Shown here one piece after another: positions 620 to 60,838 of a DNA stretch of 64,000 bases (position 1 is its first letter; each line of letters begins with the position of its first letter). The position numbers and the translations under genes were made by a program. This DNA comes from Octopus sinensis (Eukaryota). Below the pieces are notes generated by a model. That model ran no database searches, was not told the origin of the DNA, and was given only the letters and a program-made list of their open reading frames with translations. The stretch spans positions 58,528,001 to 58,592,000 of the forward strand of contig NC_043010.1 in NCBI RefSeq assembly GCF_006345805.1, given 5' to 3'.

Positions 620-643
620 CTACTTTTTAATTCGAGTTGGTAA
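620..643 (-). CDS. Protocadherin A terminal coding micro-exon (LPTRIKK*)
   Basis: Minus strand reads ttctttacttctttttcag|TTA CCA ACT CGA ATT AAA AAG TAG: a polypyrimidine tract plus AG acceptor. Phase 0 matches the phase-0 donor of the large exon. The same peptide is encoded downstream of all six large exons. Confidence 0.85.
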   Translation of the reverse strand, partial: LPTRIKK

Positions 644-1139
644 CTGAAAAAGAAGTAAAGAAACTGATCAGTCATTGATTGATATTTTAGGAATAATATT
701 GATTATTGATTTCAAATATTTAGCCCAAGGCTAGCAATTTCAATGCATTGACTGGTTTAAAAAATCCACATCAGACGCCATGACGGATCTAAGGTGCAGG
801 TACAAGAGGTGGTCAAACTCTGCATAAGGAGTAGACAACCACCATATATAACTATATAGATATATATATGTGTGTGTGTGTGTGCGCATGCGTATAGGTA
901 GACTATATGATGCTTGTGTGTGAATGGCTATACTCCATGGTAGTGAGACATGAGCTCTGCATGCAGAAGACAATCGTAGACTGGAGAGAAATGAAGGTAG
1001 TATGCTCTGTGTATGTGCACATGTCTGACAAAGTGCAAATGTACTGAGTGAAAAGTTGGGACTCACAGAGGACTGAGATGTCTGGCAATATGAAGTTCTA
1101 GAGAAGACTCGCCCATGTCAGCGAAACTGGGTTCTAGAA

Positions 1140-1770
1140 GTGCTGTTTGTCCCACACTTCACAAAAAAACTTCTCACACACCCTACCACAAGAAACCAAA
1201 CTACATCTCTACGCTTCCCCACATTTCCATTTCATGCTCTATGCTTACCTCCCACTCCCTAATCATGTCCTCTTGGCCCTGTTCCACTATATCATTCCTC
1301 TACGCTTGCCTCCAATTTGTGTGTTCCACATGCTCAATCTCACTGTATTATTGCTCTCCACTAGCCCCTGACCTGTGCTCAACCCACACCTAACTAGAAA
1401 ACTTCTCACATACCCTACCACAACAAACCAAACTACATCTCTCCTCTCCCTCACATTTCCACTTCATGCTCTATGCTTACCTCTCACTCCTCAATCCTGT
1501 CCTCTTGGCCCTGATCCACTATATCATTGTTCTCTGCTAGCCCCTGATTTGTGTGTTCCACCCACACACCATGCCTCACTGTATCTCCACGAGCCCCTGA
1601 CCTGTGTTCCACCCACACGTAACAAGAAAACTTTTCACACACCCTATCCCAACAAATCAATCTACATCTCTTCTCTTCCTCACATTTCCTCCTTCTTACA
1701 CTGTGCCTGCCTCTCACTCCCCAATCCTGTCCTCATGGCCATGTTTTTCTGTATTATTGCTATCCGGTAG
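1140..1770. repeat. Three imperfect ~230-bp tandem repeats in the last intron of gene A
   Basis: The ttctcacac..ccctaccac..aaactacatctct motif recurs at ~1171, ~1403 and ~1632. Confidence 0.75.
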
Positions 1771-2309
1771 CCCACCCCACCACTCTATATATACTCAGGT
1801 TCTCACCACCCACTTCTCCCTCCTCTGCACTCTCCAATCATGCTCCTTTCACAATATCCTGCCACTTATATTATGACATTCGAACCTCAAGGGTCTGCCC
1901 TGACACTTGCAGCCATCTGTATCTCTCTCTTCCTTCACTCAACCATCCATTTATATTCTGATCCCTCTCCTTTGTGAGTGTGCCCAGCATTTTGCCACCA
2001 TCTATCTCTATTCTGCTGTCTCCCACTCTCTCATATTCCTCCTCCTACATTTCCCTCAGGCTGGATAACCATGTATTTCCTTTGCGGTAGTGCACCTGTT
2101 TCTGTCTTCATTCCTGATCTCTCTCTCTCTCTCTCTTTCTCTCTCTCTCTCTCTTTCACTTTCCTTCTCTCTGGCTGGATAACCTTGTACTCCCTCTACT
2201 GTAAGACACCTGTTTCTGTGTCTACCTCACTATAATCTTTTATCATCTGATATAAGATCACCTCCTCCAATGTAAGATCACCTCTCTTCTCAAAGAATTT
2301 TTTGTCTTG

Positions 2310-2620
2310 CAAGTACTTGGTGACCCTGTCAGTGCAGGTGCCCCTTAAAAGCTCGCAGTCCACATTGTAAAGTAGTTGGTGTTCAGAAGGGCATCCAACT
2401 GTAAAAACCTTGCCAAAACTGGCCTCAACTGCTCTTGAGCCATGTAAAAATAATTAAGTCCATTCTGCTGAGTTGTTGCTGTTAGAAAGGGCATCCAGCT
2501 GTAAAAGTCAGGCCAAAACAGTTACAGAAGTCTGGTGCAGGGTTCTGCTTGGCCAGCTCCTTCAAATTGTTGCAACCGTGCCAGAAAAGAAGGCAGACGT
2601 TAAACAATGACGATGATATT
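2310..2620 (+). mobile_element. SINE / RTE-tail-type interspersed repeat
   Basis: The gaagggcatccagctgtaaaa...ctggtgcag...acgttaaac(gat)n tail recurs at many other positions in the window. Confidence 0.6.
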
Positions 2621-2754
2621 GAAGATGATGTTCATACAATCACCCGAGCAAACACATACACATACAAATATATATATAGAAACACAAACAGACAGAAAGA
2701 TAGATATATAGACAGAGATAGGTAGATAGATAGACTATATATAGTGTAACTTAC

Positions 2755-58500: not shown

Positions 58501-58550
58501 GCAATTGTTGTTGTAACAATCGGTTGTGTTGTGAAATGAGTGTGTTGTAT
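58201..58550 (-). other. Protocadherin E 5'-UTR exon 1 (5' end uncertain)
   Basis: ACAATGGAG|GTAATC donor, one base shorter than in paralogs, in a region with many 1-nt deletions. Confidence 0.5.
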
Positions 58551-59390
58551 ATAGATATACAAAATAGGATAATTATATGTGTTAATATAGGGTAGTTGAA
58601 TATAAATTTCAATATACATGTATTTGTGTGTATTTCTGTATGTATGTCTATATTTCTACTTGTATATATGGATGTACATACATAAATAAATCTAAATTCT
58701 GACCGAAACCTTTTGAGTGAAGTAGGCAAGTACAGACTCCTTCGTGTGTGGATGTGTGTGAAAGTGCTCAGATTTCCTCTCACACATAAGATATCAAGTG
58801 GTTACATAAATGTATTCACCTCTCATACCTCCTGACTTATTATGATTTATATAATTCCATATAAATATCGATAGATAGATAGATAGATAGATAGATAGAT
58901 AGATAGATAGATAGATAGATAGATAGATAGATAGACAGACAGACAGATGTACACAATATGACATGCATATATATATATACATATATATATATATGAAACT
59001 TGTGTGTACATCTTGTAGTATGCTATTTAAAGCATGTTCACTGTCTTTGGCTATCTGATGTCAGCAACAGTTTGGTTATTAGTGCCACTGGATTTTCTTC
59101 AGGAATTCCTTTATCTCCATCCAGTATATAACAAATGAGAGAAGAGGAAAATAGAATTCATGAGATTTTTGTTAATCACAATAATGATTTCGACCAATCT
59201 TGCACTGGTCCTTTGAATCATGCGGTGCAGCAAATGATGTACCCCAACCAGTCATTCCAAATCTCACCAGCAAAGGACAAATGCAAAATGGGTTGAAATA
59301 TTTATTATGATTAATAAGCAATCTCGTGAATTCCATTTTCCCTTTGTGTCATTTGTAATATATATACACACACACGCACACACATGCACA

Positions 59391-60208
59391 CACACATTGG
59401 GGAGAATGGGTAAATTGTTGCTAATTTATATTTTTAATTTCACACATGCACATTGTTTGTTTCTAATTTTGTCAACTACACAGTATAGAAGGGTCAGCTG
59501 GGCACCGTCTTGTGAGAAAAACAGCACCATGACACAATTCACTCGGCCAGAAATTTGGAAACGACATGCTTTACTGCTTGGAAGTCATGCCAGAGGCTCC
59601 AGTATGGACATTTCAGAGTGTTTGGGTGTGAATCTGAGGACATGTACCAAGAGTGATAAAATCCAGCCAACATCATGGTGTTTGGAGTGATCACTAGTGA
59701 TGGTGACATTATGCCTCCAATCATCTTCCCACGTGTCTTCAGACTCAACACAGAGGCCGACATCAAGTTCCTGGAGGAGGGAGTGCTGTCCTGGGTCAAG
59801 AAGATGGTTGCACCATGCCACATAAGCAGAAGAACCCAGTCATGGCTGTCAGACAATTTCTGCAACCACACCACCCCTAACATCTGGCCACCTAACTCCC
59901 CAGACTGCAACCCCCTTGATTATTATGTGTGGGGCACAGTTGAGGGAGAGACCAAGTAAACTCCTTGTAACACCAAAGAAGAACTGAAGGCAAGGATTAT
60001 GGCAGCATTCACCAACTTAAACAAGGAGACCGTTCAGAAGAGCTGCAGGAGATTCCAGAGTCGTTTGGAGGCTGTGGTTGAAGCTAATGGCGATTTTATT
60101 GAATAAATTCAAGATCTTTTTATGTAATTTTGGTAAATATGTTAAAATGAGATATCAGTGTTATTTTCATTTTTGCATAATTTAGACAATATATTCACCA
60201 CACCCTGT
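59391..60208 (+). mobile_element. Tc1/mariner superfamily (maT/DD37D-like) transposase remnant
   Basis: MVFGVITSDG..WPPNSPDCNPLDYYVWG motif; degenerate inverted ends. Confidence 0.75.
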
Positions 60209-60814
60209 GTGTGTGTGTGTGAGCGCACGTGCATGGGTGTGTGGGTGTGTCTATCTCTATATATATTTATAAATTAGACAGAAAATAATGAGTTATATAT
60301 ATTTGTTCTTTTCTTATAGATTTAGAGCTGTTTCTGATATGTGTTTGGGTGCATTCGTGGTTCAGTCATTTGATTCATTGACTGAAAACATGGGGAACCC
60401 CTTAGCCCCAGCCATCTTCCTCAGAGCCAAAAAGACCAGTGTTTCACCTGGGTTACTAATCCATTATTAGTCCCTCTCTTTCAGTCTACATGCACACACA
60501 CACACACACATACATATATAAACATATGTATATAAACATACATATGTTCTGAACATGCACACATTAATCAACATATGTACATATATACATACACACATAC
60601 ATATTATGTAGTAATGTAGTGTGAACTTTGATAGAATATGGATTCAGAATTCTAGGGTGTATATTAGTGTGTGACCTACTGTAGTGTGTGTGTGTATGTG
60701 TGTGCATGTGCATGTGTGTGTGTTCATGGAATGTTCCAGAATGGTAAGATCTTGACAGAATATTCTCAAGTCTATTTGTGTAATAATATTTGTTTTTCTG
60801 GCAGTGATGTGGGT

Positions 60815-60838
60815 CTATTTCTTAATTCTTGTTGGTAA
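60815..60838 (-). CDS. Protocadherin F terminal coding micro-exon (LPTRIKK*)
   Basis: tttcttttcccattccag|TTA CCA ACA AGA ATT AAG AAA TAG. Confidence 0.85.
   Translation of the reverse strand, partial: LPTRIKK

Follow-up and report, generated by a model that had tools for sequence, protein, structure and literature searches.

Predicted private last exons encoding a seven-residue tail in a tandem array of octopus protocadherin genes

Genes and exons of the locus

The window analyzed here, that is, the whole 64,000-nucleotide (nt) stretch C14:58,528,001-58,592,000 of the 2.72-Gb Octopus sinensis assembly (13,516 contigs), carries six tandem protocadherin genes, denoted A to F. Each gene includes a large exon that encodes the ectodomain and, farther downstream, a 24-nt element that appears to be the coding part of a last exon private to that gene and reads LPTRIKK followed by a stop codon. 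All gene features are on the minus strand, and "downstream" of a large exon accordingly denotes lower coordinates. The features, in window coordinates, are as follows.

620..643, minus strand: gene A, coding part of the micro-exon, TTA CCA ACT CGA ATT AAA AAG TAG (LPTRIKK and stop); acceptor AG at 644-645
644..2754, minus strand: gene A, phase-0 intron of 2111 nt, GTAAGT...CAG
2755..5178, minus strand: gene A, coding part of the large exon, 808 codons from ATG to ...NTIL, intact
10735..10758, minus strand: gene B, micro-exon, LPTRIKK and stop
10759..13393, minus strand: gene B, phase-0 intron of 2635 nt
13394..15817, minus strand: gene B, coding part of the large exon, 808 codons (= P0001); acceptor tttcag of the 5' untranslated region (5'UTR) 33 nt before the ATG
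22962..22985, minus strand: gene C, micro-exon, LPTRIKK and stop, with AAG
25235..27656, minus strand: gene C, large exon, frame broken by two 1-nt deletions
36860..36883, minus strand: gene D, micro-exon, LPTRIKK and stop
37868..40291, minus strand: gene D, large exon, intact; 100% identical to residues 1-808 of P0135
50971..50994, minus strand: gene E, micro-exon, LPTRIKK and stop; flanks identical to those of gene D
51994..54410, minus strand: gene E, large exon, frame broken by five small deletions in the first 290 nt
60815..60838, minus strand: gene F, micro-exon, LPTRIKK and stop, with AAG and the stop codon TAG; the annotated product P0131 (XP_036364983.1) ends in LPTRIKK
62531..64000, minus strand: gene F, 3' part of the large exon, which continues past the window; 807 codons when taken whole from the genome

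The large exons correspond to six tandem open reading frames (ORFs; stop to stop, minus strand), each located upstream of one 24-mer. These frames are 95-98% identical pairwise at the protein level, and each contains five Cadherin domains and one Cadherin_2 domain as defined in Pfam, the makeup of protocadherin ectodomains. The acceptor tttcag is conserved 33 nt before every ATG (window 15818-15850, 40292-40324 and the equivalent positions), which suggests that each gene has a separate 5'UTR exon. Gene C is either a pseudogene or the product of an assembly or long-read indel error, and gene E, likewise, is either a pseudogene or a case of long-read indel error; the micro-exons of both are intact despite the frameshifted large exons.

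One micro-exon behind each large exon

In a pattern search of the window, the 24-nt consensus TTACCAACWMGAATTAARAARTAR matches six times without a mismatch, always on the minus strand, with match starts at 620, 10735, 22962, 36860, 50971 and 60815, whereas 100 dinucleotide-preserving shuffles of the window yield no match. These are exactly the positions that an earlier note on this sequence had given for pyrimidine-rich AG acceptors followed by the element: each of the six 24-mers is immediately preceded by a pyrimidine tract and CAG, with a pyrimidine content of 76-96% in the 25 nt preceding the acceptor. The large exons of all six genes end in ...CCC AAT ACA/ACT ATA TTG followed by GTAAGT, that is, on a complete codon, confirming the phase-0 donor (ATATTG followed by GT) described in that note. 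The introns from donor to micro-exon, computed from the coordinates, are 2111, 2635, 2249, 984, 999 and 1692 nt long in genes A to F, in keeping with a claimed distance of 1.0-2.6 kb.

When the large exon and the micro-exon are joined in phase 0, the translation runs ...SPPNTIL-LPTRIKK-stop, the predicted junction between a large-exon donor and its own micro-exon being ...AATACAATATTG joined to TTACCAAC. The two other frames of the 24-mer read VTNKN-stop and CYQQELKNK. Both were rejected, given that the donor is in phase 0 and that the observed differences among the copies would alter residues in these frames; the phase-1 use (YQQELKNK) that had been entertained as an alternative is rejected with them.

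The one-to-one arrangement extends beyond the window. In the 304 kb of contiguous sequence around it, large exons occur solely on the minus strand, 12 of them complete and one a fragment, and the pattern YAG followed by L-P-x-[RW]...stop has 12 minus-strand matches in this region, one behind each of the 12 large exons, as well as a single, unrelated match on the plus strand. All 12 large exons close in PPNTIL, PPTTIL or PPSTVQ followed by GTAAGT, and the broader donor pattern P-[PAQ]-x-[TV]-[ILV]-[LQ] in phase 0 is present in all six window genes and in all 12 genes of the 304 kb. The micro-exons, in turn, all consist of an acceptor AG, 7-8 codons of the form L-P-[TAK]-[RW]-...-basic, and a stop codon; the introns that precede them across the 304 kb range from 631 nt to 17 kb. 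In the entire genome, the exact nucleotide pattern occurs nine times and the peptide-level pattern, LPTRIKK and stop behind AG, is found at 10 loci, all within 115 kb of C14. The notion that every gene carries the micro-exon fits the 304 kb as regards the L-P-x-[RW]...stop pattern (12 of 12) and is too broad for the genome, given this small number of loci and the different ends of most other octopod protocadherins.

Homogenized large exons and divergent 3' parts

The large exons are 96.5-97.6% identical, and the similarity between units is sharply bounded. Genes B and A share a single blastn block (13388-15886 versus 2749-5247; 96.8% over 2,500 nt) that extends 6 nt beyond the donor at one end and, at the other, reaches about 36 nt upstream of the 5'UTR acceptor; outside this block, the introns and intergenic DNA do not align. 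The block shared by B and F (13388-14863 versus 62525-64000; 99.3%) also begins at the donor. Because the homology blocks between units stop at the exon edges, the large exons are most simply explained as homogenized by gene conversion, with the tracts ending at these edges. Units D and E are very recent duplicates, being 95% identical over 4.9 kb that include the intron, micro-exon and 3'UTR (35517-40392 versus 49550-54510).

The distribution of variable codons follows the same boundaries. Among copies A to I, 5 of the 8 codons of the micro-exon vary, compared with 28 of 408 codons in the 3' half of the large exon. Within the large exons of A, B, D, F, G and I (genes G and I are located outside the window, at C14:58601191-58603614 and C14:58618618-58621041), codons 101-400, which cover the N-terminal repeats, include 54 that vary only synonymously and 46 with replacements; for codons 401-808, the respective numbers are only 19 and 9. 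The micro-exon stands out because the tracts exclude the intron, the micro-exon and the 3'UTR, in which older divergence has persisted.

Selection on the seven codons

The six copies of the micro-exon in the window differ by ACA/ACT, AGA/CGA, AAA/AAG (twice) and TAA/TAG. All five differences are silent in phase 0 and most of them change the residue in the two other frames, just as the earlier note had it for phases 0 and 1. Copy I, outside the window, has AAG TAA. In phase 0, 16 of the 72 possible single-base changes in the 24-mer are silent, so that the window copies alone (5 of 5 substitutions silent) give P = 5e-4. For the LPTRIKK class as a whole, at least 11 substitution events can be counted, 9 of which are silent or stop-preserving (binomial P = 4.7e-5); the two non-silent events are conservative, Ile to Leu and Lys to Arg.

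The micro-exon is an island of conservation. In the 100-nt flanks, copy A, the genomic copies g3 and g4 and two genes of Argonauta hians are 0.53-0.67 identical to copy B, which is the level of the shuffled control (about 0.56), whereas over the 24 nt proper the same copies are 0.79-0.88 identical to B. In a blastn comparison of the 3' part of gene A with the corresponding parts of its neighbours, the sole match at the micro-exon position consists of the micro-exon and its acceptor (29-46 nt), in line with the view that the flanks of copy A are unrelated to the others.

Farther afield, the codons change and the peptide persists. The tenth genomic copy (g4) reads TTA CCC ACC CGA ATC AAG AAA TAA, and the Argonauta orthologues read TTA CCA ACA CGA ATT AAG AAA TGA and TTA CCA ACC AGA CTC AAG AAA TGA. 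Two paralogues from O. bimaculoides are encoded by CTT CCG ACG CGT ACA CTG AAA CGA TAA (LPTRTLKR) and TTG CCC ACC CGG ATA CAG AAA TGT TGA (LPTRIQKC). In total, LPTR, which is written TTA CCA ACA AGA in the window, employs three Leu, three Pro, four Thr and four Arg codons. The tails that unspliced read-through of the donor would produce vary, namely, VSMRL-stop, VSYL-stop, a 40-residue tail in gene A, VS-stop and VSIILQKTPH-stop.

Judged from sequence comparison, the micro-exon peptide is under purifying selection, as the earlier note had proposed. It is the peptide that is conserved, as four observations show: the element is present once per gene, forms an island of conservation, shows an excess of silent changes and undergoes codon turnover. 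In the diverged 3' parts, moreover, nothing but the splice signals and the seven codons has been retained, with substitutions falling almost solely at silent sites, which means that selection acts on the peptide.

The alternative is that the 24-mers are alike only through recent tandem duplication or gene conversion, in which case there would be no selection and the element need not be an exon. The near identity of the large exons and of the D and E units, including intron and UTR, is what such an explanation predicts, and the flanks of the micro-exon are indeed homologous at 69-86% among copies B to F. Yet the peptide is kept in A, g3, g4 and Argonauta, where the flanks are at the shuffled level; the conversion tracts stop at the donor and so do not reach the micro-exon; and the differences are nearly all silent, with distant paralogues writing LPTR in other codons. 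We therefore regard shared recent ancestry alone as a very improbable account of the micro-exon.

Even less credit, in our judgement, is due to the possibility that the 24-nt block is not coding sequence and serves in RNA processing, for example as a polyadenylation site. The Ile-Lys codons of A, B, D and E do contain the hexamer ATTAAA, and the stop codon of B, C, D and E falls within AATAAA (e.g., window 10735-10745). However, copy F has neither hexamer, A lacks AATAAA and C lacks ATTAAA, and the O. bimaculoides paralogue with the tail LPTRTLKR has no hexamers and still keeps the peptide and the AG acceptor. Moreover, about 100 nt of 3'UTR downstream of the block are conserved among B to I, and therefore the transcripts should extend beyond it.

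Annotated C-termini in octopods

The best protein match is a cluster of 815-amino-acid (aa) proteins, that is, 808 residues plus 7, ending in ...SPPNTILLPTRIKK. Among the members of this cluster are CAI9733534.1 of O. vulgaris, where the 815-aa models amount to the 808 codons plus LPTRIKK, and XP_036364983.1 of O. sinensis. The O. sinensis protein (P0131) corresponds to window 63976-62531 plus LPTRIKK and is, accordingly, gene F itself. A near-identical array is present in O. vulgaris on OX597827.1. Public models ending in ...NTIL-LPTRIKK or close variants exist in O. sinensis, O. vulgaris, O. bimaculoides and Argonauta hians; in particular, Argonauta models end in LPTRIKK and LPTRLKK, and O. 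bimaculoides XP_014772602.1 ends in LPTRVKR. The agreement of the private terminal coding micro-exon with annotated C-termini in these four species, as well as the gene anatomy, the copy number and the conservation pattern, are direct observations, and the search of other cephalopod protocadherins for a C-terminal LPTRIKK proposed in the earlier note thus finds it in octopod models (O. vulgaris and Argonauta).

More distant paralogues in the same four species have the tails LPTRTLKR, LPARTLKR, LPTRTSKK, LPTRIPKR, LPTRIQKC, LPTRLPKR and LPKWLPKR. In all five models examined (one from O. vulgaris, two from Argonauta and two from O. bimaculoides), the translation of the large exon equals the model minus its 7-8 residue tail, with a GT-AG intron of 497-2510 nt and the donor at the same position as in the window genes.

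The models in question are those of the YPQYESQ type, named after a cytoplasmic domain of the form FYPQYESQ...W...E-[KR]-x-P-P...L-L; LPTRIKR is also found among their tails. They share with the window genes the large exon, the phase-0 GT-AG intron and the last coding exon of 7-8 codons, and nothing differs in kind, save that genes A to D are covered by a chimeric model without the micro-exons (see below). Annotated examples are XP_036364983.1 in O. sinensis; CAI9733534.1 and CAI9733544.1 in O. vulgaris; XP_014772602.1, XP_014776976.1 and P0022 (named protocadherin-18) in O. bimaculoides; and "protocadherin gamma-C4-like" in Argonauta hians. The annotation of O. vulgaris drew on Iso-Seq, RNA-seq junctions, protein alignments and ab initio prediction (PMC10700109), so its models are plausibly supported by transcripts.

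The private last exon is, then, an ordinary gene structure that is already in the public annotation. The earlier description of this exon as hidden, and likely to be missed by annotation pipelines, does not hold for the RefSeq and ENA models of the four species, which contain it; it does apply to one O. sinensis model, P0135, which omits the micro-exons of genes D, C, B and A.

Extent of the subfamily

Among the best 120 protein relatives, LP[TAK][RW]...basic tails are almost exclusive to proteins with the YPQYESQ-type cytoplasmic domain, and the majority of these 120 protocadherins have unrelated C-terminal ends. A sister class of paralogues (P0007 and P0010; L027/L028, O. bimaculoides CM046614.1) has the phase-0 donor at the same position, after ...SVLL, and a last exon coding for about 45 aa (RAAEPLMF.LHPQLQRCE...), the sequence of which is conserved in both O. 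bimaculoides and Argonauta; neither the window nor the 304-kb region encodes this exon. The LPTRIKK tail is thus a mark of one young protocadherin subfamily, contained in a single sub-array, and not of all protocadherin genes.

Beyond octopods, a search of representative proteins is dominated by giant FAT/dachsous-like cadherins, and the few protocadherin-sized matches have other tails. A region-restricted protein search for the tail retrieved octopod proteins only, with just 19 candidates scored. In the literature searched, LPTRIKK and YPQYESQ are absent and the matches to LLPTR are unrelated to cephalopods; the table of octopus-specific motifs in Styfhals 2019 has no C-terminal tail motif entered.

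A chimeric model and the use of the junction

The public O. sinensis model P0135 (4,660 aa) is pieced together from the large exons of gene D, part of C, B, A and further genes (window 2719-40291 and beyond). The junction examined, ...NTIL-HSVMEVG..., has no AG acceptor in the DNA (...TTTAA followed by CATTCTGTGATG), and the real acceptor, 33 nt before the ATG, would bring in an in-frame TAA. Because its junctions lack canonical acceptors, P0135 is likely an annotation artefact that arose by chaining among paralogues that are about 97% identical, and not evidence of read-through splicing.

This model nevertheless counts in favour of the possibility that the micro-exon is a minor or alternative 3' end and that the main products are either unspliced (VSMRL-stop) or joined to other exons, those of downstream genes included, in a read-through reminiscent of vertebrates. 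Consistent with such a possibility, O. vulgaris P0129 joins ...NTIL to a different tail, related O. bimaculoides genes have X1/X2 isoform models with the same donor and other tails, and the sister class has its own conserved last exon. Several observations make it improbable, even if somewhat less so than the two alternatives discussed above. The read-through tails are not conserved, the NTIL-HSV junction of P0135 has no AG, and neither the P0129 tail nor the exon of the P0007 type is encoded in the window or the 304-kb region. Moreover, the seven codons, being under selection, must be translated. Cephalopod protocadherins, furthermore, are described as multi-exon, whole-gene duplicates without splicing to shared final exons, and as homogenized by gene conversion (PMC9068888). 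We infer that the junction between the large-exon donor and the private micro-exon is the main one used in vivo.

On sequence grounds, we consider it very probable that each gene of the array has a private coding last exon, that the genes multiplied by whole-gene duplication and that selection acts at the level of the peptide. Some points weigh against this reading. P0135, as it stands in the public annotation, joins the large-exon donors to the next gene instead of the micro-exon. The micro-exons of genes C and E, the large exons of which are frameshifted, may have been kept through youth rather than selection. The agreement of annotations across species is not fully independent, inasmuch as models can spread by protein alignment, and the O. 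vulgaris pipeline included O. bimaculoides proteins (PMC10700109). Finally, a search of 5.8 billion proteins with the C-terminal 101 residues encoded by the large exon yielded only two genome-derived models and no transcript-derived junction protein.

Under the reading that we favour, namely, private last exons copied with their genes, the window belongs to an array in which young protocadherin paralogues follow one another head to tail on C14. Each gene would start with a short 5'UTR intron, the acceptor of which is 33 nt before the ATG, followed by one 808-codon large exon for a signal peptide, six cadherin repeats, a transmembrane (TM) helix and about 100 cytoplasmic residues. The private last exon, reached across a phase-0 GT-AG intron of 0.6-17 kb, would devote its first 24 nt to Leu-Pro-Thr-Arg-Ile-Lys-Lys-stop and the remainder to the 3'UTR. 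The micro-exon would have been copied along with each gene through whole-gene tandem duplication and would not represent a shared constant exon. Gene conversion, with its edges at the exon edges, would keep the large exons about 97% identical, and the intron, micro-exon and 3'UTR, being outside the conversion tracts, would have diverged, in gene A beyond recognition.

Comparison with vertebrate clusters and the function of the tail

In the alpha and gamma protocadherins of vertebrates, all variable exons splice to the same three constant exons, located at the 3' end of the cluster, and each variable exon is a first exon that has a promoter of its own and no splice acceptor ahead of it. Variation in the vertebrate clustered protocadherins is greatest in the N-terminal repeats, with homogenization of the C-terminal half. 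The octopus array resembles these clusters in that it comprises tandem large exons that encode six cadherin repeats, a TM helix and a short cytoplasmic piece and end at a donor; in that many isoforms have an identical C-terminus; and in that the variable codons are concentrated in the N-terminal repeats, with a homogenized C-terminal half. The differences are that each octopus gene appears to have its own last exon, with no shared constant exon, that the large exon is preceded by the acceptor of a predicted 5'UTR intron, and that the shared tail is 7 residues long, compared with about 125-150 in vertebrates. Thus, the contrast between private and shared constant exons drawn in the earlier note stands as regards one last exon per gene, and does not stand as a novelty, having already been published (PMC9068888).

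The sub-array is, on this analysis, made of complete three-part genes with private last exons, which fits the published view that protocadherin diversity in cephalopods arises by whole-gene duplication and not by splicing to shared constant exons. The analysis also exposes a probable mis-annotation, the 4,660-aa chimera over at least four genes, which loses their real C-termini, and points to clear peptide-level selection on a seven-residue tail in surroundings that are otherwise unalignable. The practical value is modest.

The conserved features of the tail are Leu-Pro-Thr-Arg and the basic end. The constant domain of vertebrate gamma-protocadherins has a lysine-rich C-terminal end that has been described as a motif for lipid binding, with a serine phosphorylated by protein kinase C (PKC). 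Both this end and the octopus tail have a basic extreme C-terminus and a nearby hydroxyl residue, a likeness of composition, with no sequence homology. Our best guess, held with low confidence and drawn from composition, is that the tail may be a short motif for docking or membrane association in the cytoplasm, in which the invariant Thr, followed by the basic end, can be phosphorylated. With similarly low confidence, phosphorylation could switch the motif, which would act in concert with the conserved YPQYESQ...W...E-[KR]-x-P-P...L-L stretch ahead of it.

A more far-reaching possibility, which we consider doubtful, is that L-P-T-R-x-(x)-K-[KR] and the preceding YPQYESQ...W...E-[KR]-x-P-P...L-L jointly form a functional cytoplasmic module, for instance, a basic motif for docking or membrane association that contains a phosphorylatable Thr. 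Such a module would define one octopod protocadherin subfamily and would amount to a "constant region" distributed as private exons. The literature searched contains no description of it. If it existed, it would be functionally convergent with the lysine-rich end of the gamma-protocadherin constant domain. The tail and the YPQYESQ stretch offer a reasonable entry point to the intracellular signalling of octopus protocadherins.

The KKXX/KXKXX endoplasmic reticulum (ER) retrieval signal was also considered, given that it, too, involves two C-terminal cytoplasmic lysines in type I membrane proteins. It was rejected: the lysines of the octopus tail are at positions -1 and -2, not at -3 and -4/-5, and tail variants end in KR or KC.

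Intergenic features

Apart from the protocadherin genes, the minus strand of the window contains an ORF of 263 aa at 57781-58572 that has no Pfam match, and the intergenic DNA includes tandem repeats of 232, 384 and 70/136 nt (1151-1745, 32977-33781 and 44123-44379). The tandem repeats are probably remnants of mobile elements.

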